DNA from: Kudoa neothunni
Lineage: Eukaryota > Animalia > Cnidaria
Length of the DNA stretch: 64,000 nucleotides
Reading direction: 5' to 3'
NCBI GenBank assembly: GCA_964304625.1
Contig: OZ199839.1
Coordinates: 8,040,497-8,104,496 of the forward strand
The notes beneath the pieces were generated by a model. It saw only the letters and a program-made list of their open reading frames with translations, had not been told where the DNA came from and ran no database searches. Made by a program: the position numbers and the translations under genes. Positions 1,644 through 64,000 of the stretch are shown here, piece by piece (the first letter of the stretch is position 1; every line of letters begins with the position of its first letter).

Positions 1644-4511
1644 CTAGTTTTTATTTTTCCAGTATCCGAAATAGAATCCCACACCAACAACAACGATGAG
1701 CGCTGGAACTACAACAGCAATAATTCTAAAATAATTGATTAACAAAATATCTCCATCAATAATTACATAGTATTTTTCGACCTAAAATAAATAAATTATA
1801 ATTCAAAAATTTTATTTTACATGGATTTGTTTGATTCGTCATCTAATCAAAATATCAGAACTAATGAACACTAATATTTAATCAATTACCTTTCTGGATC
1901 TCGACAAAACCAGTGATATTGTTATCCGTGCCATGATACAACATTAAACGGTAATTGTTGGTGTTATCCACATTTGAAATTGTAAATTCCTTGCATGATG
2001 GAAAAACAGAACAACCTTGTTCACCAGTTGTCATGCATTTTTGGACGATTGGTTTGGATGGATCATCCCAATTTTTCAATTCCCATTTGCATAACGACTG
2101 TTCATCAACGCCTGTAGGAAGAGAAGTTTTAACTTTTATGTTTTCGCCTTCTCTTGTAAACACCACAGTTAATTTGATCGGATTATTGGTGGGGGTAGGC
2201 TGTGGGTCTAAATTAAAATTTAATTAAAATATGAACGATATGAATTTAGAATTAGATGTTTTATTACTTATGGGTACTTGGATGGTAGTTTCTGCAGATC
2301 TGCCAACAGCCGTAACTAAAACTTCATATTCCTTGTCTGCTTCGTATCCTTCCTTGAATATAATTTCAATGCATAATGGCGGTTGTGCACATGGAGTGAT
2401 TTCTTTTTTTTTATTTGAAGATGGCACATTCTGTGGTTGCTGTCCATTAGTCGCCCTAGATATCGCTATTTTAGAAGGGTTTAGATACTGCAGAGGGTGT
2501 CCCAATCTTTGTTGTTGATGACGGTGGTGGGCATTGGTAGATCAACTCGGATTCTTGCCCTTTTTTTACGTTTACTTTATAGTGACAAACAGCCGTAGGA
2601 TATGGTGTTGACAGTACACCTGTCACTTTGAAGCCTTTTTCTATAAATTCTGATTGTAATGTGAGCGTTGAAAAAGCTTGAAACATAATTAGTTATATAA
2701 TTCGAGGTCAATTATTTATATACTCGTTGTAATTTTATATTCTTTTTCTCCATAATCCTTATGTGCAACAACCTTTAGGTCATATTCAGTTCCAGGCATT
2801 AATCCTATAATTTTTTGAGACTCCTTACAAAAACCCCTGCAAGGATAGCTATCTTCGCACATGGCACACACATATACATCCTTTCGATGAGGGCTTATAT
2901 AATAAGCACAAGTCTTGTCAGTAGATGCAATTTGTTCATTCCCATTTATTGCTTTAACAGACGCGGTTGTATCCGTTACTGTTGGAGTTGTTTCAGAAAA
3001 GGTTGGACCAGATTTCTTTGCTATATATTTATTTTAAACAATATTTTTTTCGATTATATTACCTGTTCGAAAGAATATATGTTCTTTAAAATCATTAGAC
3101 ATACCATTCGAATTCGGGGCTGCAATTTTAAGAATATATGGTTTTCCACTATCCAATCCTGTAATCGTAAATGCAACATCACAGTTCGTGCCACAATCTT
3201 CTTGGTCAGTTCCACACTTTGCCGTTACAACAACTGCAGGTTTGGGTTTGTCTGCTTCATAAAAAGTTACAGTACAAGTATCAAATCTAGGTTCATTTTC
3301 TGGTTTAAACAAGGGAACATTTAGCGTAACACCAGTAAGTGAGTGTGTTGACAATAAGGTAGGATCGGCAGATTCTGTGATAACTATAAGAAGAATATAA
3401 ATAAATAAAGCTTCATGAAATACCAAATTTTTTCTGAACATATCCGTCAAACGTGACGTCATTGATGGTCAATGGTAGATGTCTAGTTTGAATCAATATT
3501 TCAACAATAGATTTGGAGTCTTCAAATACGAGCTCAACATTATTACAAGGTGCATAACATTTATTCGTCGATCCACACACTGATTTGTATTCATTGTTAC
3601 TTGCGGATGCTAACACTTCTCTTACACTGAAAAGACATATTTCAAACGGAAATTTGTTTGTAAACTTTAGCATATACTTTGTCTTCACATTCGAACTATA
3701 GGTCACGTAATATTGTGGCTTATAAACATCAAAATTGAATAGGGTGTATTTATTTTGCAGGTTGTAAAAGAAACTGGGATAATTATCGCATTTCATTTCA
3801 TAATATGGAATCATCAAATTAAACTCCATTTCGCTTTCATTATTATCAATGCAACTTTCCTTAACTGTTCCGTCTTGGTATTTTACATCCTTGTAAAATA
3901 TCGGACATTTCACCGGTGTACAAGTTTTTGTACTCAGTTTCAGCTTTTGGTTGTTTGTTGTTATTGTTACTTGGGGATTGACCAATAATGCTAATAAAAA
4001 TTTATGAACAATCTTAGGTGCTTTAATTACTCAATTCCAATCCAAATACAACCCCACGATTATTTTTTGCTGCAGCGGTTGCTGCTGTATTATCCGTAAA
4101 AACGGCAATATACTTTGTTTTCGGAGAAAACTTGTCAAAACCAAGCTTATTTCCACTACTTGAACATGCCCAAACACATTGGTCATTATTTGTTCCTTCA
4201 ACACGACCAGGGCATTCGTTAATTTCAACAAGATCAGTGTTTTCAGTATTAGATTTTTTGATATGGCAATTTTTCCCCGAAACATAATTATTTCCACCTA
4301 ATATCAAATTAACCTCTAATTGATTATTCTGTTTCAAAAGTTTGTATTTTAAAGTATTTTCAGTATCAGCTGAATTTGGAGCATCTCGTTGGGCCACTTC
4401 TGTACTCATGAGCGGAGTGGAGGCTATATATAATTAGTTATATTTTTTGTGATTTTTATATATACATGAGAGGAAAGTGAAAATTCCTAAAAGGTAGACA
4501 AAGTCTTTCAT
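1644..4511 (-). CDS. Family A copy A1: spliced type I membrane protein with 7 Cys-rich FN3-like modules (one apparent +1 frameshift near 2478)
   Basis: ATG at 4511 (MKDFVYLLGIFTFLS, signal peptide-like). Exons are collinear with A2 and bounded by GT..AG. Ends ...VVGVGFYFGYWKNKN TAG at 1644. An extra C in a CCC run near 2478 splits ORFs 2471-2686 and 2224-2505. Confidence 0.85.
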
Positions 4512-5192
4512 TATATTTTGCAAAAGATAAAAACGATAGCTGTCGTTCAATATGAAACTCAAAAAGTTGATCGGATTATAATTCATATATTATATGTATA
4601 CCCAGAATTAATGTTCGTCTTTAAACCAATGAAGCATCAATGCAAATATTCCGGAAATACTAATTCATCTTAACAATTATTTTGACGGACAGTAATTTAT
4701 TATCTTGAATATTAATTTAAAGTAATATTACGAAAATGAGAAACATTCATAATATCAGAAGGAAATCCAACCTCAACTTTATCCCACACCATATATATCC
4801 ATTCACACATTTCCAATAAAAAAGAAGAGAGGATATAATGTTTCCATGAAATTGATAATTTTATTAAGTTTCGTAATCTTGGGAAATATTTTAAACAAAG
4901 TTCGATTGTTTTTTGTGTACGTAAAAAATGTCTTGTCAATTCCAACGTATAGGCTCCATTAGATTATAAAGTAACTCAAACGTTAAATTCTACAAAATTT
5001 ATTTTCTTAAAAAGGGTAAAATTAATCTTCCTTTTATGTATAACCGGTAAGACAATTTTATATAAATCTATTAGAATATTCATAAAAAGCGTACTAAAAA
5101 TTTGAACAAATATCTGTCCCCGAGCTTTTTTGAATATCTTATGAAATATTTTGTAGCATAATAATTTTTTACTTGTTGATGATTATTAATTA

Positions 5193-5556
5193 CTAGCGCA
5201 AAAGTCCCGCTTCTCTCGGGCTTCTTTGCCCAACCCAGTTAGGCTATGGTCTTTTAGAGTTCAAATTTAATGAAGTGTGCTTAGATAAATGGCACAAATA
5301 TTACACCAAAAAATTAAATCTAATAGATTAACAAATGAACATAATCTTATTTTGTAGCGTTATAATAAACTTTTAGGAATTTTACATATGGTATACCATA
5401 AAATAATCCCTGTTTAAATAGCACAAAAGCTAATCCAGAGTTTATATAATATTAGTTTGATTCTATCAATATGATGCAGTCTTATTGATATAAGTATTAA
5501 ATGTACATACACCTAAGGACACAAAAACTTTATATATATAGTCGATAGTAGATAGA
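5193..5556 (-). mobile_element. Short non-autonomous Helitron-like element
   Basis: Minus strand begins A|TCTATCTACTATCGACTATATATATA and ends with the hairpin CCCG-agagaag-CGGG followed 9 nt later by CTAG|T: TC...CTAG termini between A and T, no TSD. Confidence 0.55.
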
Positions 5557-6003
5557 TTAATGTTTTTTAATATAACAACAAGTATTTAAACGTATAATAT
5601 GTTTATTTATTTGTAACAAATTTAATACAAAAATTATACTTTTTAAAATATTCAACCTAAATATAAGATAATCAATCGTTTAATTCAGGGATAAAATAAA
5701 ATATTACATCCACACCAGGATAATATATAGCACCAGTTAGAAAATTTATGTTTTTATTAAAATTTTTAAATGAGGCAAACATTATTACTTCGTTAAATTA
5801 TTTTTGCTTATAATTGTTTCATTAATTTTGGAGGTTCTGACAATATATAAATTCATTATTTTCCATCGGTTGTCATGAAGATCTAATTTTCTTAATTAAA
5901 TACGTTACGCAAAGTCAAAAATATGCTCAAAACATGCAGATACAAATTTATGTGCAATTCTATGTTATTTAAAATTATTCATTGACAACTTTTTTTTAAA
6001 TTA

Positions 6004-8252
6004 CCCCTCCGATGACATGGGGTAGAATCTACCCCAATGCAATTTTAAAATTCATATATCTCCTTATGTTGGAAATGTTGGAATTTAAAATTCTATGCAT
6101 TCCTGTAACATACATTTATTTTTAATTTTAGTCGAAAATATTTTTTAAATACTATATATTAAAAAATTTATTACAGGTTTCTCTCCTAAAGTACTTTGGG
6201 TTAGAAATTACCCTATCTATTCTTTTACGTTTAAATTAAAAAAAAATATAAAAAACTCTTTTAATTCATATATATATATATATATATATATAATGTTTTT
6301 ATAGGCACAATTGAAATAAATTTACATATCTCACGTCAGTTCATTGTGGTTTAATCTGCTCCATTAATAATTCATTATAAATCTGTATGACGTAATTGTA
6401 TATCAGGGTTAGACGCATTCAAGTAATTAAATATAGTTTTCGGAAAAAACATTAATTTTGGGGAATATTTATTTTGAACAATCTAAATAACTGTTTGAAG
6501 AATGTATTGGACAATAAAATTTGTAGCATTTATGGCACTATCTTGTAATTTTTGTCATTCTCTCGAGGAAAAACCTAACATCGTGCACTTTTTATGTTTA
6601 CAGGTGGTTCCAGATGGGAAATATTTGCTTTACTGAGATTCCTTTTTGCTGGTACATGGGTAGAATGTTTGGCCAACAATAGTTTATATAGTTGCTCTGC
6701 AATCTCTCTTAAGAAGGTTCTTCCATTATTCGATTCACCAAATATTTCTTTATACAATGCAAAAACACCCACCAATGACAAGTCGACTATGCTAAAGAAT
6801 ACGAATAGGAGCCATCTCCTTGTAAATCAACGAACAAAAACCGATGCAAGCATCCTGTCGACGTTATCTACGCCGCCCTTAGTTTTATTATAATCCAATA
6901 TTAATTGAGGTTTGAACTTAAGGTATTCTCCAGCAACATGATAATTCTGTTGCTGGAAGTTAGAAGAATCACGAATTTACCTTTTTTTCCACATATGATA
7001 ACAACATATATTTATCGTGAAACAAAAAAATGATGGAATAAAGAGGCCTTTTTCTTGAAGGTTGAAGACAAGGTGGCACCTCATTTTTGTTTTTTCACAC
7101 TGCTCCCAACAACTGCAACTTTCTTTCCAACAATTTCCCCGCAAGAGGCATCGATGTGAAGAAATTATCCGCGAGAACATTTCGGCCGTAATCAAACAAA
7201 TGAGTTGTAAGGTTGAGTACGATGTTTTTACCTATGTTAGTTTGTTTGTTTGTCTCAGAATTATTGTTTCCCAAGTAAACGCTGGCATTACAAACGTGAT
7301 TGGCGATTGGATCAACCAGTAGAAAAAATTCTTACCATAGTTTGCCGGCATTATGGGCATATACTGTTGGAAACGACATCTTCCCCGGAACGGAACCAAT
7401 TGTTCATCGACGGTAACATCCTCGTTCGGAGAAAAATATTTAGGTAGCATTTCAACCCACTTCTCCCATATATCACGAATGGCACAGAATTTGTCCAACT
7501 TTTTACATTCTACTCGTGTATTACAGTTATCGAAATGCATTGCTAGGGAAATATGTTTGAAGCGCCGAAGCGAAAATGATTGCCGATAGATTTCTCTTCC
7601 TTCCTTCTAACTGAACAACTCACCTATATGCTCCTCTCTATCCTTATGGATAGGTATGAAAATTGACAATCGTAAACATCCCCTAATTTCTATCAAATCA
7701 AGATCGTACCATTGGTCGCCGAAATGAAGTTTTCCAAACATATTTGTAAACAAAACGATTTCGTTACTTATTTCATAATTTTAAAATAACAAAAAACGGT
7801 CCAGTATGCTTTTTATTTTTGTTTGAGCGTAAGCAGTAGGTCCTGGGAGTGGATACATTTTACTCTCCAAACCTTTCTTTGTTGGACGAGGCTTCGAAGC
7901 GCTCCATTGAATACTATCTTTACTCGTAAGAACGTCAATACCAATGTCGATTATTTCCATTTCGTCTGAAAATTTTTCATCTTCGGAAAGTGAGCGTGGA
8001 GGTCACTTTCCGAAGAACAGAATTCATCGTACAAATCATCCGAGCCGCTCATTGAAAAAATACATGCTCGCGCCAACAATAAATATATCACTTTATCGTG
8101 TGGTTAAAACTAAATCTGCCGGCTTGAAATCTGTTAGATTCTAATTTATAAAACTTTGTAATATGTTTCGTATTTTAAACGAAAAAAGTAGTTGGCGTAT
8201 TTTTTTCCCCAAAATACTTTACACGTACATTGTTTTTGTCATCATCAAAAGG
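6004..8252 (-). mobile_element. Degenerate piggyBac DNA transposon (PGBD4-like transposase pseudogene)
   Basis: ORF 7232-7540 contains VTVDEQLVPFRGRCRFQQYMP..YG (piggyBac DDD transposase). A YNKTKGGVD motif lies near 6870-6890. Right end reads ...gtcatcatcaaaaGG-TTAA; subterminal palindrome GGGGTAGAATCTACCCC near 6019. Many stops and frameshifts. Confidence 0.85.
6268..6292. repeat. (TA)n microsatellite
   Basis: About 12 uninterrupted AT units. Confidence 0.9.
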
Positions 8253-8589
8253 TTAATGAACTCAGGATGATTGCACTACCGAAAATTTATTCATCTTGAA
8301 ACTTTTAAAAACTTACGAAAAATTAAGATAAGTAAATATCAGACAACACGTAAAATATGAATAAAATATAACCAGTAGTTTTAGAGATATTCATTCCTTG
8401 AGATATAGACACTTCCAAAAATAAAACCTCCTCATCTAGATACAGTCGTTTAGTTTTATTCATAAATCGATCGAATAGGTTCAATCAAAATACTTTAAAT
8501 TAAATGAATTGAACAGACTCAATGACAAACTTTGATTAAATAAATTATCACTAATCGACTTTTTGAGTATTGTTTGTCAGAAAAATAGT

Positions 8590-8918: not shown

Positions 8919-8919
8919 T

Positions 8920-9674
8920 TAAATATGCCATATTAGCACCAATGTCATCAGTTAACTATTTAAATTCATCAAAAATCTGCGTATACAAAATTATTATTCC
9001 TATGGGATTAATGAAATATTCAGCTGTAAAATATTTCATTGGATTATCAAAAGACAATGATGTAGTGATACTAGCCAAAATTTTTCTTTCCTTATTTATG
9101 AATATGTTAATAGATTGTTTTTAAATAGATTTATCAGTAAAATTTCAAGTGAAGTAAAATGTTATCCTTCTTAAGAAAATAAACTTTTTTAATTCAACAT
9201 TTGAGTTATTTTGTACTCTAATGGATCCCATAATTTAGAGACGACAATGAATGGTTTTACGAGTCCAAAACCTGTTGAATTTTATTAAAAAGCTTACCAA
9301 AGATTACATAATTTAACAAAATTGTCAATGTCAAAGAAAACATGCATCCTCTTTTCTTTTTAATTGAAAGTAGGTGAATGGATATATATGGTGTGGAATA
9401 AAGTTTAGGTCGGATTTCCTTCTGATTATTAAGAATGTATCGAATTTTAATCGTATCTCTTTAAATTTATTTTAGGAGTTATAAATTACCATCCGCCAGA
9501 ATATTTTTTAAGATGAGCTAATATATCCGAGATTTTTGTATTGATGATCCATTGAGTTCAAGTCAAACATCAATTCTTTATGTATATATATATATATATA
9601 TGAATTATAATCCGATCAAATTTTTGAGTTTCATATTGAACGACAACTATCGTTTTTATCTTTTGCAAAATATA
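8920..9674 (+). promoter_or_regulatory. Conserved upstream region of family A genes (putative promoter/5'UTR)
   Basis: Recognisably homologous upstream of all five A copies (e.g. atatggtgtggaataaagtttaggtcggatttccttctgattatt), with a TA-rich tract about 75-95 nt before the ATG. Function is inferred from position only. Confidence 0.5.
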
Positions 9675-12591
9675 ATGAAAGCCTTTGTCTACCTTATGGG
9701 AATTTGTACTTTATTGTCATGTATATATCCAATTTCCAAAGAAATATTAATAACTTGTAGCCCCTTATTTGCTTATACACACTCAAGGAGGTCAGGGAGA
9801 TGCTCAAAATCCAGTTACTACTGAAAACTCTCTAACTTACAAACTTGTAAAAGTAGACAATGAATTGAAGGTTAATTTAATATTAAATGGAAATGACTAT
9901 CCCAGGGAGAAAAAGTGCCATATCAAAATATCAAATAATGAGGAAACAAACCTTTTTGATATTACTACATGTCCTGGTGGTGAGCAAGAAGTCAACAGTA
10001 ATCAATGTGTTTGGGCATGCTCAGGAGGTTCCGATAAACTGGGTTTTGATAAGTTTACTCACAACACTAAATATGTTGCCATCTTTACAGATAGCGCTGT
10101 AACCGCTGCTGCAAATAAAAATAATGGTGGAGCCGTATTTGGATTGGAATTTCGTAATTAAAGAACCTAATATTGTCAATAAATCTTTTTTAGAATTATT
10201 GGTCAATCCGAAAGTTGCAATTACGAAAAACAATCAAAAACTACAATTTAACACCAAAACTTATAAACCAGTGAAATGCCCCATATTTTACAAGGATGTG
10301 GAATTTAAAGAAGGAACACCTGAAAATACTTGCGATGAAAATTGTGAAAGGGAAGTGGAGTTTAATTTGATGATCCCACACTATGAAATGAAATGCGAGA
10401 ATTATCCTAGTTTCTTTTACATCCTTCAAAACAAATACACTTTATCAAACTTTGATGTTTATCAGCCACAATATTACGTGATCTATAGTTCGAGTGCTAC
10501 AACGAAATATATGCTAAAGTTTACAAACAAATTTCCATTTGAAATGTGTCTTTTCAGTATAAGAGATTCGTCAACAACAATTACAGAGACAACTACCGAT
10601 GACTATACATCAAAGTGTGGTTCGGACAACAAAAAATGTTTTGCACCTTGTAATAATGTTGAACTTGAATTCGCGACTTCCACTTCTGTAATTGAAGTAT
10701 TGATTCAAACCAGACACGTATCGTTGGTTAAAAGTGGCATCAAATACAATGGATATATTCAGAAAAAATTTGGTATTTAATGAATATTTACTCATTTATA
10801 ACCTTCTCATAGTTGTCACAGAAACTACTGCCACTCCATTATTGTCAACATACTCGCCTACTGGCGTTACATTAAATATTCAGTTGTTTAAGCCAGAAAG
10901 CAATCTCAAATTTTCTACTTGTACTGTAACTTATTTTGAAGCAGACAAACCTAAACCTGCTTCTTCTGAAGTTTCGAAATGTGAAGATGACAGCCCAACC
11001 TGTAGAACAGAGTGCACTAATGCAATAACGATTAAAGAGCTCGATAGTGGAAAACCATATATTCTCGAAATCGCAGCAGGCAATGGCGACGGTATTCTTA
11101 ACAATTTTAAAGAACATATATTCTTTCGAACAGGTAATATAATAGAAAACAAATATTTTTTAAAATAAATATATAGCAAAAAAACCTGAATCCACCTTTT
11201 TTGAGACAAGCCCAACAGTAAAGGACACTACTGCGTCAATTAAAGCAATAGATGTAATTGGTACAATTACACATGAAGACAAAACTTGTGCTTACTATAT
11301 AAGCCCTCATGGAAAGGATGTATATGTGTGTGCCATATGTGAAGATAGTTATCCTTGTAGGGGTTTTTGTAAGGATTCTCAAAAAATTATTGGGTTAATG
11401 CCCGGAACCGAATATGACCTAAAGATAGTTGCACATGAGGATTATGGAGAAAAAAAACATAAAATTACAACGAGTATATAAATAATTGACCTCGAATTAA
11501 ATAACTAATTATGTTTCAAGCATTTTCAACGCTCATACTACAATCGGAATTTATAGAAAAGGGCTTCAAAGTGACAGGTGTACTTTCAACACCACATCCT
11601 ACAGCTGTTTGTCAATATAAAGTAAAAGTAAAGAAAGGGCAAGAATCCAAATTGGTCTATCAGTGCCCACCACCAGCTTCTACAACAAACACTGGCCCAT
11701 CCTCCAATGCACCAAAAACTTCTAAAATAGCACTAGCTAGGACAACTAATGGACAACAACCACAGAACGTGCCGCCTTTAAATAAAAAAACCGGAATCAC
11801 CCCATGCACACAACCTCCATTGTGCACTGATATTATATTCAATGAAGGATACGAAGAAGACAAGGAATATATAGTTTTGGTTACGGCTGTCGGCAGATCT
11901 GCAGAAACTACCATCAAAATACCCATAAGTAATAAAACATCTAATTCATATCGTCTTACTTTGGTTGAGTTTTTAAAATTATTAAAAATATGTACATTAA
12001 TTCTTATTATACTAAATTTTAATTTAGATCCACAACCTACCCCCAGTAACAATCCAATCAAATTAACTGTGGTGTTTACAAGAGAAGGCGAAACCATAAA
12101 AGTTAAAACTTCTCTTCCTACAGGCGTTGATGAACAGTCGTTATGCAAATGGGAATTGAAAAATTGGGATGATTCATCCAAACCAATCGTCCAAAAATGC
12201 ATGGCAACTGGTGAACAAGGTTGTTCAGCTTTTCCATCATGCAAGGAATTTTCAATTTCAAATGTGGATAATACCAACAACTACCGTTTGATGTTATATC
12301 ATAGTACAGATAGCAATATCACTGGTTTTGTCGAGATCCAGAAAGGTACTTGAAAAAATGTTATTGGTCGCTATTTCTCATTTTTGATTAGATGATGAAT
12401 CAAATAAATCCATGTAAAATAAAATTTTTAAATTCTTATTTATTTATTTTAGGTCGAAAAATACAATGTACTTCTTGATAATGATATCTTGTTAATCAAT
12501 TATTTTAGAATTATTGCTGTAGTAGTTCCAGTGCTCATCATTGTCGTTGGTGTGGGGATTCTATTTCGGATACTGGAAAAATAAAAACTAG
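9675..12591 (+). CDS. Family A copy A2: ~825-aa spliced type I membrane protein with 7 Cys-rich FN3-like modules
   Basis: Exons: 9675-9720, 9761-10153, 10194-10772, 10813-11133, 11177-11473, 11521-11928, 12028-12345, 12392-12413, 12453-12467, 12509-end. All introns are GT..AG (40, 40, 40, 43, 47, 99, 46, 39, 41 nt) and the frame stays open. Signal-like MKAFVYLMGICTLLS; FN3-like GLMPGTEYDLKIVAH; TM IIIAVVVPVLIIVVGVG. An extra G near 12555 gives the tail ILFRILEK* (stop 12584) instead of FYFGYWKNKN* (12591). Confidence 0.9.
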
Positions 12592-13325: not shown

Positions 13326-13400
13326 AGGCAGTGGCTATTGCTACAGATCCGTATAATCCGCATGCGGGGGTTGTCTATTGCTACGAGAGGGAATAACTCC
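13326..13400 (+). repeat. Dispersed repeat terminus TAGGCAGTGGCTATT..., probable transposon end (second copy at ~41440-41515)
   Basis: taggcagtggctattgctac...gtataatcc...ctattgctacga here versus taggcagtggctattaccac...gtataatcc...caattgccacga at 41440. Confidence 0.55.
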
Positions 13401-28971: not shown

Positions 28972-28974
28972 TTT

Positions 28975-50100: not shown

Positions 50101-51820
50101 AGTATGTTGACAATAATGGAGTGGCAATAGTTTCTGTGACAACTATGAGAAGGTTATATTTGAATAAATATCCATTAAATACCAAATTTTTTCTGAATAT
50201 ATCCTTCATACGTGTCTTCACTTTTGGCCAAAGATACATGTCTAGTTTGAATCAATACTTCAACAACGGACTTGGAATCGTCGAAAATGAGCTCAACATT
50301 ATTACAAGGTGCATGACATTTACTTGCTGAACCACACTTTGACTTGTATTCAACACTGTTATCGGCTGTTGACTTATCTCTTATACTGAAAAGACACATT
50401 TCGAAGGAAATTTGTTTGTAAACTTTAACATATACTTCGTTGTATCACTCGAAATAGAGGTCACGTAATATTGTGGTTGATAAATATCAATGTTTTAATA
50501 GAGTATATTTATTTTGCAGTTTGTAAAAGAAGCTAGGATAATTGTCGCATTTCATTTCATAGTGTGGAATCAATCAAATTAAAATCCATTTCACTTACAA
50601 TATTTTCTGTGCAAGCATTTTTAGCTTCTCCTTCCGCATATTTCACGCCCTTGTAAAATATGGGGCATTTCACCGGATTACATGTTTTTGTACTAAATTT
50701 CAGTTTTTTCACATTTTTCTCGATTGTAACCTGTGGGTTAAACCAATAATGCTAAATGAAATTTACTAAAAATATTCGATGCTTTAATTACGCCATTCTA
50801 ATCCAAACATCCAGCCCCCATCTTTATTTTTATTTGCAGCAGTCGCTGCTGAACTATCCGTAAAGACGGCAACATACTTTGTCCTCGGAGGAAACTTGTC
50901 AAAACCAAGATTATGTTCATTTCCTGAGCATGCCCAAACACATTTGCTATTATTTGCATCGTCAACGCGACCAGAGCAATCGTTAATTTCAACAAGATCC
51001 GTGTCTACATCATTAGATTTTTTGATGTGGCAACTTTTCTCCGTAGAATAGTCGCTCCCAGTTAAAATTAAACTTAACTTTAATTGATTGCCCTCTTCCA
51101 CAAGTTTGTAAATTAAAGGGGTTGCAGTAGAGACTGGGTTTGGAGCACCTCCTGGACAGTTTGCGTGTATATAAGTGAAAAGTAGGCTATACGTTATTAG
51201 TAGCATTCTGTTGTAGTATGTGTATTTACGCAACAGAAAATTACAAATTCCTAAAAGGTAGATAAAGTCTTTCATTATATTTTGGAAAAGAAATAAACGA
51301 TAGTTTTCGTTCAATATAAAAATCAAAAATTTGATAGATTATAATTAATATATATACACAGAATGAATGTCGCCTTAAAACCCAATGAAACATCGATATA
51401 AATATTCGGAAATATTAATCCATCTTAATAAATATTCTGAGGGATAGTAATTTATAACCCCTAAAATTAAATTAAAGAATACGATTAAAATTCGACACAT
51501 TCTAACCAATATGAAGGAAGTTTAGACTAAATATTATTTCACATCGTAATGCTGATTTAAATATTTATAATAAAAAAGACAAGGGGATATAGGGCTTCCT
51601 TGACATTGATAATTTTATAAAATCTTGTGATATTAGGTAAGATTTTAAATATAATTAGATTGTTTTCGTATAAATAAAAATATTTGTTATCATTTCTAGA
51701 ATATAGATTCCATTAAATTATAGATTAACTCAAATGTTAAATGCAACGAAATTTATTTTCTCAAGCAAGAAATAATTTTACTTCTCTTCAAACGTTACTG
51801 ATAAACCAATCAAAAACTAT
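46742..51820. repeat. Direct segmental duplication of ~1-5070 (3' flank, family A gene and upstream region)
   Basis: 46742 onward reproduces the first bases of the window almost exactly and stays collinear through A5/A1 and their upstream regions. Confidence 0.85.
48372..51275 (-). CDS. Family A copy A5 (multiple single-base frameshifts: pseudogene or sequencing errors)
   Basis: ATG 51275 (MKDFIYLLGICNFLL). Same exon layout; ends VVGVGFYFGYWKNKN TAG at 48372. Indels in exons 3-7. Confidence 0.8.
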
Positions 51821-51827
51821 ACATTAA

Positions 51828-54455
51828 CTCTTTCATGCCAAATGTCCACCCTGGTACCCCACAAATTATACATACCATAAACATGCATTTAAATTTATTT
51901 AGATGATTTATTGAATTATTACATTTTTTTAAAAGTTAAATGTTTGTTTTCAGTAATGGCCAATTAGGTAAACTAAGAGATCTAGCATTTATAATAAGTT
52001 AAATAGTAATCCTTACATAAAATCAACAAGGAATACAAAAAATTCAAATTTATACTCATGAGTCGGCTTTTTCTTATCAAGAAAAATTAAAATTACGAAC
52101 ATTAAAACGTGGTTCAATGCGCTATATTTCATAAGATATTTAGCAACCTATCAAAAGATAATGACCTAATCAACACTTGGGTACTAGGAAGGACATTTGG
52201 CATTCGTGGATCTCCGGCTTTCGAACACATGTATCACAATTTGGTTTTTAAATGTTCAAAAGAGGGAATCATAAAAACTGAAATTGTGATATTTCCTGAT
52301 CCAGAGGAATATGTTGAAGTCTTTGGAACACAGAATCTCGAACGAAGGGTTCTTGAAGCTTACACTGACAATAATCAAGATTCAGACTGTTCTGATGAGG
52401 AAGTTGTACCAATCTTTAACTGTTTAATAAGTGAAACCCTTGGAAATATGCCAAATATTCCGGAGACGGAAGATATTGTTTTTAGTGAAGTTACCGATCT
52501 CGTTTTACCGATAGATTATATCAACTTCTTTTTCAATGAAGACCTAATTCTGTTAATTATTGAAAAAATGAATTTATATTCAGTTCAGCAAAATTATAAT
52601 TTTCAAGTTAGTAAAGAAGATATAAAACGTTTATAGGAACGTTGATTATCTTGGGAATTGTCAAAATGCGGAGATGTCGTTGCTATTGGTCTAAAATTCT
52701 GAATTATCCACCTGTTTCTGAGTTTATGTCGAGAACCCGCTTTGAAAATATTTCAAAATATTTACACTTCACTGATAATATGAAAATTATCACAAATCCG
52801 AATTCTTCAGAATATGATAAATTTGCAAAGATTCGACCGGTTTTAGATTCTATTAGAGCAAATTGTTTGAAAGTTGAATGTTGAAGAAAGAATTCAATTG
52901 ACAAGAAAATTATTCCATTCAAAGGTAGGTGTAAATTGAAACAATATGCTCAAAAGAAACCGACGAAATGGGGATTCAAAATGTCCGCGAGATGTGGAGT
53001 TAATAGGCTAATGCATGATTTTTATTTGTACGATGGGGAAAAACCTGATGTGGTTAAAAGTTGTGGTCTAGTATCCGGTGACTTTGTTAGAAAGTTGTGT
53101 GAAAGTTTACCCTTGTCCAAAATTTATTTTGTCTACTTCGACAACTGGTTTATATCCATTCCCCTTCAAATTTTATTAAAACAAAGGAGCATTTACTCGG
53201 TGGGAACCATTTGCAAGAATAAATTAAAGGGATGTCTATTACAGAATGAGACTGATTTAAAAATCCGGGGTCGAGGAGCATTTGAGAGTGTGCACAACGC
53301 TAATGATAATATTTCCATAACACGTTGGTTTGATGGATCTGTTGTAACTCTCTCATCTATTCATTCTTTGATCCAACCGAATAAAATTGCGAAAAGATTT
53401 GACCGCCCAAAAAATCATGAATGACATTCCGTGTCCTGCAGTTGTAGACGAATATAACCAAAATATGGGAGGAGTGGACCCTTCAGATATGTTGATGTCG
53501 CTCTACGTAACGAAACATAAATGTAAAAAATATTACATGCGAATTTTCTTCTGGGCTCTCAATACATGTATTATAAATGCGTGATTATTACACAAACGAA
53601 ATTGTAAGATTCAAAAAATTCCTAAGAGAGATAGAGTAGACTTGATGAATTTTTCGTTAATAATAGGCGAAAGTCTTCGTTACTACCAAATAGCAAGTGC
53701 TCCGAAAAAACATGATAGAGTGTCTCTTAATAATTCTTTAGAAAAAATTGATGATAAATATGGAAGATCTAAAATAAGAAAACATCCTCTCAGTAATCAT
53801 ATTCGAATGGATAACGTAGGGCATTTTCCTGAAATAGTGTGAGTTAAATTCAGATGTAGAATATGCTGTTATATCCTTCGAGATTAAGCAATAAACATAA
53901 TTAATTTACCGCTCACTTTGAGGGATTATATAATATATTCTCCTAGTTATCGTATTTTGAGTTTACTCGTGCCTCTTTCTTAGCGTAAATTTGCAATTAT
54001 TTACATATGCCAACGAAAAACTCAATTTAAATGCACTAAATGCTATTCTTTTTGTTGTATTGTGAAAGATAGAAACTGTTTTTTAAATTATCATAGTTCA
54101 AATATCTAAAGAATTTTCAAATTTATTTTGTTTGTTTTTGTGCGCAGTTTAATGCGCGAAATCGTTGTTTACCACCAATGCCAAATGTCCACCTCGGTAT
54201 CCGCGCTAAAAACAGCTGAAATTATACTTTTAATCAATTTATATCTCAATAAAATCATTAAATATAGGATATTGAGTGCTGTAACAATACTACGCGTACA
54301 TTAAACAGGGAGCGGCGGCTCTGTTGAACCACTAATAACCTATATAGTATTGAGTCATATTGGTGCATTTATTCATTGAGTATCTATTCGTTATAAGTGC
54401 CTGTAATATATTAAAAAAATCGTGAAATGAAATACAAAATTTGGGTACGAAAGGG
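51828..54455 (+). mobile_element. Degenerate piggyBac transposon inserted upstream of A5
   Basis: TTAA-CTCTTTCATGCCAAA ... TTTGGGTACGAAAGGG-TTAA. Motifs MSRTRFENISKYLHFTDN, KPTKWGFK, VYFDNWFIS, YNQNMGGVD and a C-terminal Cys-rich finger. The family A upstream homology resumes on the far side. Confidence 0.9.
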
Positions 54456-55913
54456 TTAAAATATTCATAAACAGGGCCGAGAAAATTTTGGCTAATATCG
54501 CTTTACCAAAGTTTTCGGAGAATCCGATAAAACATTTTAAAGCTGAATATCTGATTAAACCCTGAGGGTTAACAATTTTTTCGACGGAGATTCATGATGA
54601 ATTTAAACTATATTTAATTGCTGGTGTTGATATAATAATTAGCACTGCCAACCCAAATCGGACATTCGGCAAAAATTTTTCCGGACAAAATCTGACCAAT
54701 CAGAATTTTTTATGAAAATAGAATTAATATTTAATTACAGTCGGGTCTCGGTATTGCGTAATATTTTGGGACCGGGAAAAAATTCCGCAATATCGAACCA
54801 CCTGCGCACGCACAGCAACGTTAATTTAACATTTCTTACAAAATAAATCATCTACTTGATATTTTTTATTTATTTATTGATAATTTCGCATGAGGCATAC
54901 TTAAATTGATATACAGAAAATAATTTAATAGGATTCTCAATGACTCGTTTTTTCGCGGATTTATAAGATTTTATACTTGAAACGTTGTAACGATTTCATC
55001 ATTGTCTATGAGATCAGGATCTTCACTCCAAAAAGTAAATTTACCTTGATCATCTTAATTTAAATGTAAAATTTCGTTTCTTCCAAAAAATAATATCATA
55101 ATATATTATTATCTACACATATGAATATTGAAATTTTACTATCAATTACTGCATAATGTTATTTCATCATCACATTACTTTAAAATTTTGTCTTGCTAGT
55201 TTTTAAATAAAAAAGAAGAATAATCAATTATTTTGGTTGGAAAATAGGTGGCTTATTAGTTCAATTATTAATTTTTTAACACTATCCATTCCCGAACCAA
55301 TTTAAACGCATTTAAATATTCAAATAAGGCATATTTAAATATTTTTGGATCTTTCTCTCCGAATAGAACATTTATGCACATTATTTTTCTCTAATTGGGT
55401 GTTAAGCGATGAATTATTCCCAGATCAATTTGCCGCACCACACAAACATTGTTTTTGATAGAAATAGGAGCTGGTTGCTTTCGAAATAATCGATAGATTA
55501 AGGACGATATGAGAAATGTTCTAATAAAGTTAAAACCTTTCTGTTTTCTTTAATGAATCTCTGGTTCATATATTTGAGGATATGATAAAATATAGATGAA
55601 GATAATAACGCATTCATTTGCGAATGACATTAAACTGAGAGCTCATTATTTCCCCTGAAACAGCGATTATTGTTAAAATTTTCTTATCACGTGTAATTGC
55701 AATTTTTCTTCGGTCATTGTAGCAGTGATAAACATCGTAGCACGCTTTTGAATTGTTTTACACCCACACATTGTGCTAATTTTTAATAGTGGACGTACGC
55801 TGTATCATCTGTTCATAAAAGTGAACCCCTCTCATCCAAATTTAATATGTATTCCAGATTGTACCTTGACAAAATCTCGGTAAAATCTCCCATCTATTGA
55901 TAAATATATTTAA

Positions 55914-58256
55914 CCCTTTAAAGACGCAAAAAAAACTATCCTCATATAACATTAGGGTCAATATGACTCCAGATATTTATTTGGTAAATTTTTGAAATTT
56001 ATCTACCAGCAGATTTTCAAATAAAACGATAATAAATAATCAATTGATCCGCTTTTAGGACAGAAAATTACACATATATAATTTTTATAGGAAAAATAAA
56101 CTCTATAATTATATTCAAAAGAGAATCTAGGTAATAATTAATTCAAACAATTGCAACATTTGTTGGATGAGTGTACTCGGCAGTATGGTCTATTACAATT
56201 CGAACAACGAAGGAACGTTTTCTTATCATTTCCACTAGAACAATAACTACATCATGTTCTTTGGTTTTTTATTTGGGGAATATTTGTAATTGGTTCGGGG
56301 AAAGGTGATTTTCTTTTAACAACTTTGCTATTATTCAAATTTAGATTGATAAGTGGTTGGTAAAGAGTTTCAGCGATTTCTTTTAGAAAGGTTCGACGGA
56401 TTTTATTTTGGCTATTAAAAATATTCTTACTTAATGCCAAAGAATTAATCAAGAATAAGTCGAGAATATTGAAAAAAATTATCATTGGCCATCTGCGAAG
56501 AGAAACTGAGGCAAGCATTCGACCAATGGTGTCGACCTCATCCTTCGCTTTATTGTAGCATATGATCACTTCAAGCTTTTTTTTGTGTGAGGTATCGAGG
56601 ATGTTAACATTGGAGGTTCCAGTTGAGATTAAAATGACAGCTTTATTTTTTTATTGACATACGACGTTAGCGTATTTTTCTCAAAAAAGGCAAAAGTTGC
56701 ACTATATAATTCCCTTTTTTCGAAGCAAGCACGCAAGTTGGAAGTTCCCTTTTGTTGTGCCGAATAATACCCAAGTATGTCAATTTTGTTTGTAGCAGCT
56801 TTGATGCAAGTGGAAAAAAAGAAAAAAAATTATCAGCCACGATATTTCTTCCTGAATGATGTATTGGTTCAGAGAATGATAGGACGATACCTTCAGCAAC
56901 ATTTAGATTTTGTTCGATATTTTCATTTTTACCCAGGTATGGGGAGATATTTAAAACATACTTTTCGATTGGATTGACAAGTAAAAAAAATTTTAAGCCA
57001 TATCTTGCTGATTTCAAAGGCATATATTGCTTAAGGGGACATCTTCCCTTGAATGCAACAAACTGCTCGTCAATTGTGACGTCTTGGTTTAGGTAGAAAC
57101 ATTTTGGTAGTTTTCTTGTCCATATTTCCCATACTTCACGTATTGGGAAAAATTTATCTGTGATTCTTCTCTCTAGACTAGTTTTTACGTCATCAAAATA
57201 AACAGATCGTGAATTTGGTAAAATCTTGTCCTTGAAAAAATTGTTCGATAGATTTCTCTACCCTCAGACACACCGAACAATCCTGCCATGGGCTCCTCCC
57301 GATCTTTATGAACAGAAATAAGGATAAGTACGCCTAAATATCCAATAAACTCCGTGGAGTCAATGTCAGTCCAATTTTCTTTAAAATGACTATGCCCAAA
57401 AATATTTGTACATTCAATAATTCTTTGACGTATACTTGTAGTGAACATTATGGAAAGACAGTCCAAAATATCACGAACTCTCCGTAAACAATAAAATGTC
57501 GGACCAGGATGAGAGCTCATGTTTTCAGCTGATGCTTTAGAAACAACAGGTTTGGTTAAGCTCCAGGTGATTCCACTTATATTAGTTGTAAAGCTATCGG
57601 TTTCAACAATTTCCGAAAGTTCATCTGACGATTTTAGAAATTTCAGACAAAACGTCTTCAAACTCGCTTCCTGACGATTCGTATCGCCAGTTGACATCTC
57701 AACACCACTCATCGTCCCGCGATAAAATTGCGCACAATATTGAGGTTGTTAATATATTACTATAATATAATGTTGAATAAAACAGGATCATGGCTTTGTC
57801 AAATAATTTAGTATAGTTAAAATGTAATATGAAAAATATTTTCGTATTAACTCTTAAAACAAACACAACACTATTTTGTTAATCCAACGGTAATGAGCGA
57901 AATGAAGATGAAGTAAACCGATGAAGATTAAATGGGATTAATTAACGTATTTAATATCGTTTTACTCGAAATTCAACCATTAGAATTTTTTTAATACTTT
58001 ATCATTGTGATTATAAAAATTTATTACCCTAATTTATCAAATAAAAATCTGGGGTCATATTGACCCCAACATAATTTGAGGACAGTTTTTTATTAAATTT
58101 TCCAGTCATTATTTTTTATCATTTTTCGTTGAAATTACTACTACAAAAATATAGGAGAATAGATGGAATCTTGTGATGTAATGAAGAATCCTAACCAAGT
58201 TACTGGAGAATTAATCAGGCTTTGGGGTCATATTAACCCCAATGTCTTTAGAGGCG
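55914..58256 (-). mobile_element. Degenerate piggyBac transposon (PGBD4-like)
   Basis: TTAA-CCCTTTAAAGAC ... GTCTTTAGAGGCG ends; palindromic GGGGTCATATTGACCCC subterminal motifs. Motifs TIDEQFVAFKGRCP, MPLKSARYGLK, RNIVADNFFS and RRWPMIIFFNILD. Confidence 0.9.
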
Positions 58257-59424: not shown

Positions 59425-61433
59425 ATGAAATTAGTTTTTTTGTGCTTTACTCTACTTTATACAGGTAACCTAATTCAATATTGGTTTATACATAATTTCG
59501 GGCGTAGTCCAACTTCATAGGTATTATATCGTGAGAAATAATGAGCTTCACAAGAATACCATTCATCTGAACTTAGAAGGAAATCCAACTCATCTTTGTC
59601 GCATCAAATTATTCACCAAAGATGAGACTTCTTATTTTTATCGAGATGTTAATTGTGGGGGTCGAAATATTTGTGAAGTTCCCTGCAGTGGAGAGTACAC
59701 TATTCACACCGACCACATAGCTCCTCATCATTTTCTTCAAATAGCCTCAAAGGCTAAAACAGACTACCTCAAAGTTGTTCACAGTATATTCATGGTGAGT
59801 CATATTTTTAAGTGATACTGTTCTCTAGCCACTTCATCTGCTCCTTTCTCCTCATACCACTTTGATGATTCAAGTGTGATCTTTATCACCAAGCATCTGT
59901 GCGAAGAGTCGCCTTTCGTTTGTCAGATTAGATCTGGACAGTTTACCGTTAAGAGTTACACTATTGATTCACAGCCTCGATGTGGTGATGAATACTTGCT
60001 GAGCAGTTATTACAATATTTACAATAAACCGCTTGAACTATACTGCGGACCTCACAATCCAAAACTTTTCTTTGATAAAAATATGTTACTAAATAACAAA
60101 GCAAACCTACTGAAAAGATTTCCTGTGAGAATCAAAAATAATACTGCCGCAAACAAAATGAACATCATATTCGATGAACCCATTCCCGACACAATTTGTA
60201 AATTCGAAATCGCTAAAAAGACTGGTACTTTAGAATCTAAATGCGAAGTCACTAATGATGGTGCCTGTTACCAAATGTGCCAAAATGTTACAATGGAGAC
60301 AAATTATATTACTACCGATAAAAATTTTAATGTTAAAATAACCACCAGGGATGGAATAACCGAATCATTGTTGATGTCAAGTAATTTAGTAATATTTAAA
60401 CCTCTTTTATATTTTTATTAGACGAAAAAAATGATATTGAAATAAAGGATATAGGCAAGTATAAAGCTACTTTAGGGGTCGCCGCACTTCATGAGAATAG
60501 TGCTCAATGCAAGGTTGAACTATATTTACAAGCTAACTACGTAAAAATAGACTCAAAATCTGTAGGATTACAAGGGTATACAAATTTTGTAACATGTAAT
60601 GCTGATATAACTATATTAAATCTTATGGCTGATACAAAATATGTTGTCAGCGTACAATATAAATCTTCTAGTAGTGAGGCTGCAGTGCACATTAATAAAA
60701 TTTTTAAAACAGGTAAATGAATTTATTTTATAGCAATTAACAATATTTATAAAAGCTAAAATTGGTGACGTTACCGCTGAAATCACAACATACCCTCGAA
60801 ATGTTGTTATTATTCCACAACAAATAGAACATGAAAATTATCAAGCAGAGTGCGTAATAATGCAAGCATTAAATGGCAACCAGGATTTTGTTCGATCAGT
60901 GTGTGAAGAATCACACAACTGCTTGGGGTTGTGCACCTCAACATTTACCATCACCAGGTTGAAACCGGATACCGAATATAAATTTAAAGCTGTTCCATTG
61001 AGTTTCTATGTGGAGACCGACGCTCTAACGAAAAGCGTTCGAACAGGTATTCATTGTTTGTAAATTTAAAATTGACAAACTTTTAGAGTCTTTATTCAAG
61101 AAGGTGGAGCTTGAATATAAATGGACGGAAAATGATTTGGAGATAACAGTAAAGGTGCAAGGTAGGAATGATGGAATTTGCGACTTTACCTTTGTGGAAA
61201 AAACTGAAGGAAAGGAAACAAAACTACTTGCTGTACACGACCAAACAAACGGCTGGAATGAACCATGCAACTCCAAAATCACCTTTTTTGATGTTCCTGA
61301 GTACAAATCAGCCACAGTGATAGTCCAACGCAGATATGACGGTGAGCCAGTTGAGTTGGAACTCTTTATCACAGACCCAGAAGCTGTGACTGCATCGACA
61401 ACTGAAACAACTGCTACTCCTACAAGCACCTAA
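59425..61433 (+). CDS. Family C: intact 598-aa spliced protein with signal peptide, 6 Cys-rich FN3-like modules and a Thr-rich C-terminus, no in-frame TM
   Basis: Exons: 59425-59464, 59508-59783, 59829-60380, 60422-60712, 60756-61046, 61087-61433. Introns 43, 45, 41, 43, 40 nt, all GT..AG and phase 1; no frameshift needed. FN3-like ITRLKPDTEYKFKAV and ILNLMADTKYVVSV. Homologous to family B (TIHLNLEG versus TIHLKLEG). Confidence 0.9.
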
Positions 61434-61786
61434 AAATACTTATTATAAACTCTTTAATTTTAGGTTACCTTATTTTTTAGTTATCGATGAGATAATTAAT
61501 ACATTTTTTGAATTTATCTTTCTTATTTATAGTATTGTCTCTTTTTTTCAATGTAATATTATTTTTTACACTAATTAAAAAAATATTAAATTAATTTTTG
61601 TCTGAATAATAATGGAAAATATTATTTTTCTGCAGTATAAATTGATTTTTTATAATACAGAAATTAATATTATTCTATTAAAGCTATGGCAATATCAACA
61701 TCTTTTAAAGAACTAATTTTGGCATAAAATATAATAATGATCTTTATTGGTAGTTCTAGATTTTTCAAAGGTTTAATAAGTATATA

Positions 61787-62946
61787 CAGTAGCGCAGGGT
61801 TATTACGTAGCAAGATTATTGGTTATTGCGCACTTTTAGAAATAGTGTGAAAAATTCAAAATATACGAATTATCTATAGATATAAATCGTGAGATAAGAG
61901 TAAAATACGTCGATTAATTTAATTAGAGAATTAAGAAACAATATTTCCGTTGGGAAAAACAGGAGTGCACACTTATTGCAAACTTCATGATTATTACGCA
62001 CCTGAGATTTATTGTTTGATTACATCGGCATGGTTAGTACGCAGTGGGAAAATAGGGAAAATTATTGCTTACTTGAAGAAAACATGTAGATTATTAAATA
62101 ATTTGAAAAATTAGGGACCAAGAGTGGAAATAAAGTGAACATCATTAGGCGCTCCGGCCTTAAATCAATCACCCCATTGAATACAATTGTATCAATAAAA
62201 TCAAAAATATTTTCAGACTTAATTTAAAGTGATTTAAGATTTTATCCCAAAACTCTTAAAAAAAATTCAAACTACTCGATATAAGAATAAATGAATGGAT
62301 CTAACTTTCGAGAACAAGAAATATAAAACTGTCCAGAGAGCACAATATAATTGGAAAATAAATTAGTCAATGGCATAAAGGACGACACGAAAGACAGCAC
62401 TCCTATAACTGCCGGTCGAGGACAGTTCCATGAGTTTCCTTCGAAAACAGTCTAAAAATGAACAGATTAAATATAAATCTAAAAGAAGGAAAGAAATTTT
62501 TCGTTTTGCAAAATATAATAAACTTTGTTTAAAACAAGAGAAATAACGAATTTCATGTTGAGAAAATAATTCTGTCTTAAACTACCTTATTTATTTTCAA
62601 GATACTCTGAACAATAAAAAAATTATTACGAAAATTTTTCACATCTCTCTATTCAAGTTATTATTAATGCAACGAAAGTGTGGTGCCCCTTATATAATAT
62701 AATAACTTCTATAGTATGATCGACCATCGTCGCGGGACAGGTATTATTAGTTTGCGAATTGTGGTTTTATCGCCTGCCACCGCTGCATTAGAGAGGGAAT
62801 AAATAAAAAACGCAGGAAAAGTGGTCGCGCCCCGCCAAATTTTCCCGTATATGCACAGGCGCTAAAGCATGGATATTAAATAGTGCAGGGATATTACGCA
62901 CTCGAATTTTTGTCCCAAAAAAGTGCGTAATATCCCTGCATAACTG
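61787..62946. mobile_element. Non-autonomous Tc1/mariner/pogo-type element (MITE-like)
   Basis: TA-CAGTAGCGCAGGGTTATTACG ... CGTAATATCCCTGCATAACTG-TA. Absent at the paralogous empty site near 29632 (aagtatacattgatttcttaatagg). Confidence 0.85.
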
Positions 62947-63254
62947 TATTTGATTTCTTAATAGGTAAATAGAAAAGTAGCTGATCATGAATTAGCAACA
63001 AATATCTTTTTTTATCTAAGTGAAGCATTTGTACTTTAATATGATTATTTTTTTGTGACATTATTAGTAAAGTAGAAAAGTTTGTAGTTTTCGTTTTAAT
63101 GCTATTTATCGGCTCTCAATTGTATTGTTGAAATGTTATTCAGTCTTATAGTTCGTGCTTCAATTACACAGTTTCGTACCTATTGTCATCTAGAGTTATT
63201 CATTTGTATAATTATTATTAAAATTAATAACGCCGTTATAATTAAGAACCAAAA

Positions 63255-64000
63255 ATGTTGGTCATTGCATTGTTAATCATTTCTCTCTGCTACAATGGTG
63301 AAATAAGCTGGAAGTGGGATTATCTATAATAGATATATTTAGCCCACTCACACAAATACTACGTCCAACGAGATCAAACCGAATTAGAGGATACAATCCA
63401 TTTAAAACTTGAAGGAGTTTCTGGAAGTAAATGCAACGTTCAATTGTTGGAAAGAAACGAATTTTTCTATCACTATATTGGGAGTGAATCTGAAGGAAAA
63501 CAACTTAAGGATGTCTCTTGTGTCGGGAAATACACTATTCCAACTGGAGCTGCTTTTCCATTCTATTATGTACAGATAAGATCCGAATATGCAACTGAAA
63601 CTCTTAAAATAATCCATAGTAATTCTATTTTTTGAATATTTTTTCCTAATTTTCTTATAGTCACTGACAGTATTCCTCAAACTCAATTTAAAGTAAATGA
63701 AACTTCAATCGAATTCACCACTAAAAATGTCTGCAGTCATCCTCAAACTTGTAAACTAACAAGTGGTGACAAGGTCCTGGATGAGTTTACTCCAACCTCT
63801 GAAACCGAGTGCAACACTGAAACCAAGCTCACCGGGTTTTTTGATTCAGTCGGTGATTCAGTCGAACTCTCTTGTGGTGTCAATCAGCCAAAAATACACA
63901 TGTATAGAAAAAATAACAAGGCTATGGAATTCAGTCCTTTGGACAAACTTCCCTATCACATTGTTAAAGGAGATGCGGATAATAAGATAAAAATCGTTTT
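63255..64000 (+). CDS. Family B copy B2, 5' part (truncated by window end)
   Basis: MLVIALLIISLCYN start identical to B1, with the same introns 1 and 2. Reading frame is open without the extra bases seen in B1. Confidence 0.85.

Follow-up and report, generated by a model that had tools for sequence, protein, structure and literature searches.

Does a 64,000-nucleotide stretch of the genome of the fish-muscle parasite Kudoa neothunni (contig OZ199839.1 of GCA_964304625.1, positions 8,040,497 to 8,104,496; hereafter the window) encode a diversifying family of surface proteins, and if so, is this a system of antigenic variation, of recognition, or of something else? A sequence-only reading had proposed that every non-transposon gene that could be reconstructed in the window belongs to one superfamily of spliced, Cys-rich, FN3-like surface proteins, hidden from open reading frame lists by introns of about 40 nt, and had inferred a system analogous to trypanosome VSG, Giardia VSP, Plasmodium var/rif or Hydractinia Alr. 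We found that the genes it described are real and are part of a family of roughly 250-350 related genes, which encode predicted cell-surface proteins built from chains of cysteine-stapled fibronectin-like modules that swap segments with one another. The proposed interpretation was only partly supported, and on present evidence the family is a candidate immune-evasion or host-recognition repertoire, with expression inferred from sequence alone.

Gene models in the window

All nine items of the sequence-only reading (five A genes, two B genes, one C gene and a C remnant) are present. The A genes have 10 exons, encoding a signal, seven FN3-like modules (m1 to m7, with m2 and m3 in one exon), two micro-exons, and a TM segment with a tail of about 5 aa. 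A2 (9675-12591, forward strand) has exons at 9675-9720 (signal), 9761-10153 (m1), 10194-10772 (m2+m3), 10813-11133 (m4), 11177-11473 (m5), 11521-11928 (m6), 12028-12345 (m7), 12392-12413 and 12453-12467 (micro-exons) and 12509-12591 (TM and tail, with one extra G against nearly all paralogs). The other copies are A1 (4511-1644, reverse strand), which ends in the tail KNKN and has one extra base in exon 6; A3 (17121-20046, forward), with at least 7 single-base indels in short homopolymers; A4 (37825-40681, forward), in which intron 1 and the start of exon 2 were removed by a deletion that stays in frame, with several single-base indels; and A5 (51275-48372, reverse), with at least 11 single-base indels. 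B1 (29938-32200, forward) encodes a signal, six modules (m1, m2+m3, m4, m5 and m6), micro-exons of 13 and 27 nt, a TM and the tail TKK, and also carries several single-base indels, while B2 (63255 to beyond 64000, forward) is the 5' part of a B gene that runs off the window. Both B products are predicted to be membrane-bound. The C gene (59425-61433, forward), the partner of B2, is an intact 6-exon gene of 598 aa with a signal, six modules, a Ser/Thr tail and no TM, and its product is predicted to be secreted. We considered a hidden hydrophobic last exon or GPI signal in C reached through a GC donor, but rejected it because it is not conserved in divergent C copies. The C remnant (28967-29634, forward) retains the last module, the Ser/Thr tail and the 3' flank, with a stop and a frameshift, and lies directly upstream of B1.

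Introns are GT-AG and mostly 39-47 nt (intron 6 is about 60-107 nt in the window copies), with phase 1 between modules, and the micro-exons of the A genes are 22 and 15 nt. The exon boundaries and exon lengths that are multiples of three are kept in 28 paralogs at 46-67% mean amino-acid identity per exon, far beyond chance, and 15 read open at 821-842 aa with signal and TM. Some refinements to the sequence-only reading are needed. Every A copy and B1 in the window carries 1 to about 13 single-base indels, so that as assembled none is a clean open reading frame except C (A2 reads open only with a shifted TM tail). Most of these frameshifts are probably long-read errors, since short reads restore the frame in A5, where short-read contigs show the frame-keeping base at about 8 of the indels. 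A pseudogene graveyard was therefore rejected for most copies, given the absence of in-frame stops in exons of correct length, the intact splice sites, the position of the indels in homopolymers and the frame kept by short reads. ‘Cys-rich’ here means 3.4-3.9% Cys (15 full models), or four per module.

About 20-35 nt upstream of the A-type ATG we identified a conserved near-palindromic element, AACG-N7-TCG (9641-9656, forward, at A2), with a TA/TG repeat of variable length about 90 nt upstream of the ATG (coordinates approximate); the element is not specific to the family genome-wide. The genes lie among DNA transposons: a piggyBac-type remnant (6000-8260, reverse; PF13843) that is multicopy genome-wide, a Tc5/pogo-type transposase remnant (35749-36162, reverse; CENP-B_N and HTH_Tnp_Tc5, both weak), an ISXO2/IS1595-like (Merlin-type) transposase remnant (43134-43568, forward; weak Pfam hit), and, within 52109-57712, two piggyBac-type transposase remnants on opposite strands (52936-53424, forward; 56667-57712, reverse). 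No other non-transposon gene was seen in the open reading frame lists, although genes with short exons could be missed in this way.

Copy number, sequence exchange and selection

To assess the size of the family in the genome (40.26 Mb, three chromosomes), we searched with a strict motif and found 243 places, against 5 in the control, or about 320 after a sensitivity correction; a first look gave 601 candidates. Distant subfamilies enter these counts but not the gene models. The family lies in clusters on all three chromosomes, so the window is not a special locus, and members reach down to about 43% amino-acid identity in the top 150. All 14 C genes or remnants precede a B gene.

Paralogs are mosaics. 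A2 and a neighbour, for example, are 100% identical in module 6 but 74% in module 4, and trees of the individual exons mostly reject one another. The sequence-only reading drew its analogies from N-terminally variable families; here variation is highest in modules 1 and 4 and low in the exon of modules 2-3, and is thus not a plain N-to-C gradient. Selection is mainly purifying, with dN/dS of 0.17-0.37. When columns were chosen on an independent set, dN/dS was 0.16 at conserved columns, and 0.96, 1.08 and 1.37 at variable columns of m1, m2-3 and m4, against 0.39-0.66 in m5-m7. The values at variable positions are about 1 and not clearly above it, and are blurred by conversion.

Predicted fold and homologs

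A full-length match to a known conserved family had been set as a test of the proposal; searched exon by exon, the spliced models matched no named family. The best Pfam fn3 score (PF00041) was 23.5 bits (E 6.5e-5) for m4+m5, below the gathering cut-off of 25, and m1 and m2-m3 gave no hit; PDB sequence searches with m2-m3 also returned nothing. The EF-loop/tyrosine-corner motif L-x-P-x-T-x-Y is present, with Leu and Tyr invariant in 29 m4/m5 modules, and the profile hits titin, fibronectin and neogenin over this stretch. AlphaFold models of m2-m3 (pLDDT 76) and m1 (pLDDT 75) are nearly all-beta, with the seven-stranded Ig-like sandwich of about 90-100 aa of FN3 domains, and align to FN3 domains at Z 6-7 and rmsd 2.6-3 A over 80-85 residues, a middling score that supports the assignment at fold level only. 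A three-module alignment for folding placed m4 onto m3 and was dropped. ESM Atlas gave generic fn3 clusters for m4-m5 and nothing above 0.9 for m2-m3. Profile-profile scores between module types were weak (E 0.007-0.016, probability under 6%), so the common origin of all modules rests on Cys spacing and fold.

Unnamed homologs with the same layout occur in five other samples, and subfamilies A and B/C predate the split from another species. Low-copy conserved members also exist. Word-index homolog searches recovered only the query's own members, and a search with m1 of the L043 gene found no syntenic orthologue of that gene. Literature searches for the family and for the sample accessions found no description of it. 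No RNA run covered the stretch, and one raw RNA run gave 0 reads.

Interpretation

We favour, at roughly even confidence, a repertoire of variant surface-coat or adhesin proteins at the parasite-host interface. What the sequence itself shows is that each A gene encodes a signal peptide, a chain of seven FN3-like beta-sandwiches (most with four conserved Cys), a short stalk, one TM helix and a tail too short to signal; that several hundred copies arose by duplication of 4-5 kb cassettes and tens-of-kb segments and keep exchanging tracts of about 100-600 nt; and that framework residues, Cys, TM and tail are conserved while loop positions of the membrane-distal modules 1-4 vary freely. The remainder is inferred, including transcription and splicing, surface display (predicted from signal and TM only), recognition by host antibody, exclusive expression and antigenic switching. 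In this view, the Cys would pair within modules and fix a scaffold that tolerates loop change, the chains would stand as rods on the plasma membrane, and subsets would be expressed by stage, cell layer or clone, so that fish antibodies or receptors raised against one set miss the next. The C-B cassette would supply a secreted and a membrane-bound form that may act together. Stage-wise antigen change is reported in myxozoans including K. thyrsites, with the molecules unknown (PMC8481699). Against this view, there is no RNA or protein evidence, dN/dS does not clearly exceed 1, the clusters are mostly interstitial, no expression site or silent-archive structure was seen, sporogonic Kudoa lives inside muscle cells (PMC8481699) and is partly hidden from antibody, and the low-copy conserved members suggest an older housekeeping role.

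A stronger form of this idea, not ruled out but doubtful on present evidence, is that an animal parasite has built a true antigenic-variation system from an FN3 scaffold, with several hundred mosaic genes (about 5% of its gene count) expressed one or a few at a time and renewed by gene conversion, and the linked secreted/membrane C-B pair as a second arm. The interpretation of the sequence-only reading is partly supported: multicopy, transposon-embedded proteins of surface type on an FN3-like scaffold, without a named family and diversifying actively by segment exchange, are supported, whereas the VSP and Alr analogies fail as membership, and the family is not a cytokine receptor either.

Among the alternatives, an unlikely but possible one is a co-expressed or stage-fixed repertoire of recognition or adhesion receptors (for host tissue, annelid versus fish host, or self/non-self among the parasite's cell-in-cell layers), working like Alr, Dscam or clustered protocadherins rather than by immune-driven switching. 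FN3 chains are typical adhesion ectodomains, a cnidarian precedent for clustered polymorphic recognition genes exists (PMC9546547), and the age of the subfamilies agrees with this; however, the tails of 4-5 aa leave no room for signalling, and we infer that several hundred copies with ongoing mosaic exchange fit an arms race better than fixed specificities. We consider it less likely still that the copy number of a structural coat or spore-wall protein grew largely by drift and transposon-assisted duplication. Relaxed constraint would fit dN/dS of about 1 at variable sites, the genome is 46% repeats (PMC12239612) and gene conversion occurs in any tandem family, but most copies stay intact and under purifying selection, and variable positions are free in m1-m4 yet constrained in m5-m7.

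Similarly unlikely are decoy receptors for fish cytokines or other immune ligands, with C as the soluble decoy and A and B as the tethered forms. The top Foldseek rows for m2-m3 are cytokine receptor FN3 tandems (IL-2R gamma at E 7.8e-5, IL-20RB, gp130 and a poxvirus IFN-gamma binding protein), m1 ranks IFNAR1 and IL-9R first (Z 6.3 and 6.2), and a secreted subtype exists. These are generic fold matches, given TM-scores of 0.3-0.4, identity of 12% or less and Z of 6-7 tied with fibronectin and bacterial Ig-like domains; the WSXWS and Box1 motifs of class I cytokine receptors are absent from the A2 and C models, and a decoy does not need hundreds of copies. An assembly artefact, with uncollapsed haplotypes or decayed repeats, is largely refuted. 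Read coverage is low, frameshifts are many, and a 49-kb twin of window positions 896-46400 lies directly upstream at 93-98% identity, but the window copies are only 78-83% identical, members occur on all three chromosomes, short reads hold the sequences and show high summed depth on shared 3' exons, and the junction pattern of the twin fits unequal crossing-over, leaving at most a few copies as haplotypes.

Myxozoans are reported to change surface antigens, but the molecules are unknown outside candidate VSP/RIFIN-like genes of one species. A genome reduced to about 5,300 predicted proteins that still keeps several hundred intact, recombining surface genes names the likely host-interface molecules of Kudoa and makes the question testable, and the conserved membrane-proximal modules and tail are possible pan-family diagnostic or vaccine targets for aquaculture.

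Comparison with known systems

The closest fold is that of the fibronectin type III superfamily, including the tandem-FN3 ectodomains of fibronectin, neogenin/DCC, class I/II cytokine receptors and tissue factor, with which the family shares the predicted sandwich in m1, m2 and m3, the m4/m5 motif, a phase-1 exon-per-module design, and weak Pfam and PDB sequence hits. It differs in having four conserved Cys per module in a C..C..CxxxC pattern, an ectodomain made only of such modules, no cytoplasmic domain and several hundred paralogs, and in scoring below the Pfam cut-off. Diplomonad VSPs, and the 18 VSP-like genes reported in Sphaerospora molnari (bioRxiv 10.64898/2026.02.11.705288), likewise have a signal peptide, a variable Cys-containing ectodomain, one TM and a short conserved basic tail, and are multicopy in a parasite; in our family, signal and TM are predicted from hydropathy peaks at both ends, and the motif FYFGY(W/M) occurs in 81 genes against 3 in the control. 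However, VSPs have more than 10% Cys and more than 5 CXC/CXXC motifs, against 3.4-3.9% and one CXXC per protein here (CXC not counted), and the Kudoa genes have an FN3-like fold, are spliced by prediction, and are more than ten times as many as in S. molnari.

The Hydractinia Alr family (PMC9546547) also consists of cnidarian clustered paralogs for single-pass proteins with Ig-like sandwiches, extra invariant Cys and one FN3-like domain. Alr proteins have an N-terminal V-set domain followed by I-set Ig domains, but the m1-m3 models rank FN3-type domains first in the wide search, with antibody V domains appearing for m1 only at E>0.05, and in place of a cytoplasmic tail with ITAM/ITIM and a single genomic complex, we found tails of 3-5 aa and clusters on all three chromosomes. 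The recombining variant surface families of protists and fungi (Plasmodium var/rif, Trypanosoma cruzi trans-sialidase and Pneumocystis Msg) are similar in being large, with a conserved anchor and scaffold, variable distal regions and mosaic formation by ectopic conversion, and the Kudoa family has the large paralog pool, conserved anchor, variable parts predicted to be exposed, and recombination that are typical of antigenic-variation systems. It differs in its unrelated fold, an animal host-cell-type scaffold, and in its mainly interstitial clusters, with no evidence yet for exclusive expression. Finally, the micro-exon gene surface antigen of Tetracapsuloides bryosalmonae (cited in PMC8481699) is a myxozoan surface protein with micro-exons. 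Micro-exon genes have a coding sequence made mostly of short symmetric exons, whereas on exon layout alone the Kudoa genes have only two micro-exons, both in the stalk, comprising 37 of about 2475 coding nt, with the coding sequence lying in module exons of 300-600 nt.

Genome context and gene structure

The window corresponds to C2:8040497-8104496 of the Kudoa neothunni assembly (G000; 40,260,978 bases in 4 contigs, three of which are 17.15, 12.04 and 11.05 Mb). The curated assembly is described as 40.2 Mb with an N50 of 12.0 Mb, three chromosomes plus mitochondrion, a GC content of 30.4%, a median intron of 49 nt and 5,316 predicted proteins, annotated without RNA after repeat masking (PMC12239612).

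When comparing the window with itself, we found five copies of a 4-5 kb cassette at 78-83% identity. Gene A2 splices, in our model, into ten exons with GT-AG introns of 39-47 nt (one of 99), in phase 1 between modules. The same boundaries, module exons of 3n length, 22- and 15-nt micro-exons and TM exon recur in 28 paralogs from all chromosomes, of which 15 read open at 821-842 aa with about 30 Cys, 2-7 N-glycan sequons, a hydrophobic N-terminus, one TM and a tail such as KNKN. Gene C is an intact 598-aa gene without TM, whereas the B type has six modules, micro-exons of 13 and 27 nt, a TM and the tail TKK. The space between these genes holds piggyBac-, pogo- and Merlin-type transposase remnants. 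Indirect support for a splice junction comes from a homolog from another sample that lacks intron 2 and joins m1 to m2 (modules 1 and 2) with the same spacing as our model. Homologs from one other sample lack some introns (the m1-m2 junction in contig L037, at 480-500; several in contig L040) while keeping others, reflecting either intron loss or partly spliced RNA. Other departures from the common layout include A4, which has lost intron 1 and the start of exon 2 by a deletion between short TA-rich direct repeats (window 37871-37878) that leaves the frame open, a 923-nt intron 6 at L021:3832-4757, probably an insertion, in an otherwise intact gene, and a GC donor at intron 7 of locus L027.

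In most A genes, a near-palindrome AACG-N7-TCG lies just upstream of the ATG, with a TA/TG repeat of variable length about 90 nt upstream (window about 9580-9656 and equivalents). This may be a core promoter, but the 172 genome-wide hits (64 for the control) include many elsewhere. A repeated element containing AACGTCCTATATCGATCGCTGAG occurs many times on C1 and C2, is unrelated to the family and is probably a transposon end.

Frameshifts in the assembled copies

Of 34 single-base exon indels, 29 lie in runs of two or more and 19 in runs of three or more (23% of bases lie in such runs), and 22 fall in A3, A4 and A5. Short-read contigs of one sample aligned to A5 show the frame-keeping base at about eight sites. 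Two of these contigs match the variable exon 4 with no substitution and 2-3 gaps, so they come from this locus, while those on the 3' exons may be paralogs. Most indels are therefore probably errors of the low-coverage long reads, although some copies, and three C remnants, are truly broken. The RNA run gave no reads, which is no test. A further short-read contig differs from A5 exon 2 (window 50997-51186) at 7 of 191 bases, about half of which change amino acids; given that the next-best assembled paralog is 86% identical, it represents a divergent allele or an unassembled copy.

Family size and the C-B cassette

To assess the size of the family, we searched the genome with one exon of A2, which gave at least 150 matches, all with E<1e-48, and with a broader profile, which gave 601 candidates. 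A strict module-3 motif occurs 243 times against 5 for the control and catches 21 of 28 known A genes, so that we estimate about 320 genes, with 240 as a floor. All 14 predicted-secreted C genes or their remnants lie 1-5 kb upstream of a predicted membrane-bound B gene on the same strand, at six or more regions on three chromosomes, including two places in the window (59425-64000 and 28967-32200). Three C copies are broken while B remains, and six B-like genes have no C. Co-duplication alone can explain this linkage, and co-function is inferred. The analysis covered 36 genome loci, biased to A-type.

Sequence diversification

Overall dN/dS is 0.17-0.37, and amino-acid identity is lowest in m1 (46%) and m4 (55%). 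Within the local cluster dS falls from 0.60 in m1 to 0.15 in m7, matching a summed short-read depth of 60-120 on 3' exons against 3-5 on 5' exons. A2 and the paralog at locus L017 are 100% identical in about 800 nt of upstream flank and in m6 but only 78% in m1 and 74% in m4, and the best donor changes every 150-600 nt. Most exon trees reject each other in AU tests, though m1 and m2-3 agree and m4 resolves poorly. With variable columns defined on distant genes and tested on cluster genes, dN/dS is 0.96, 1.08 and 1.37 in m1, m2-3 and m4, respectively, and 0.39-0.66 in m5-m7, whereas conserved columns give 0.16. This shows freedom or mild diversifying selection in distal loops, not proven positive selection.

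A 49-kb tandem twin of window 896-46400 lies directly upstream (C2:7992014-8040189) at 93-98% identity, with one A gene where the window has A2 and A3. The twin is a segmental duplication or a retained haplotype; identities around the junction fit unequal crossing-over, but the haplotype is not excluded.

Predicted fold and relatives

Searches and structure models were made with parts of the proteins rather than with the joined spliced products. Models of m2-m3 (pLDDT 76) and m1 (75) are beta-sandwiches whose best matches are FN3 domains of cytokine receptors, tissue factor and fibronectin at Z 6-7 and low identity, and m4-m5 carries the FN3 motif. Disulfide pairing could not be read from the models. 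Among 1.84 billion representatives only 19 unnamed proteins match, all from Logan or ENA contigs, and no named NCBI protein matched. Contigs read from five samples have a GC content of 17-38%, and those inspected show the same exon order; one holds a whole seven-module A-type gene, and another a B-like gene with one clear best match in G000. SNF5 and mitochondrial rpS14 are neighbours in the same relative orientation in both a 20%-GC relative (L043:1350-4820) and G000 (C3:1349920-1356904), each next to family genes, which form a cluster. The source species of these contigs are likely related myxozoans.

Interpretation

We read the anatomy as that of a non-signalling surface rod with a fixed frame and variable distal loops, renewed by duplication and conversion. 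The exon layout, copy number, mosaic identities and site pattern are shown in the sequence, whereas splicing, expression, surface display and any role in immune evasion are inferred from sequence alone, from a low-coverage assembly and without RNA. On this basis we favour, at about even confidence, a variant coat/adhesin repertoire under host immune pressure. A fixed recognition code remains possible but is less well favoured, neutral structural expansion and cytokine decoys both appear unlikely, the latter slightly more so, and an assembly artefact is very improbable. We found no description of the family in the literature searched, which leaves out most subscription journals. At the level of genome organisation it works like var, trans-sialidase or VSP pools, but by the features tested it is not a member of the VSP, Alr, MEG or cytokine-receptor families.
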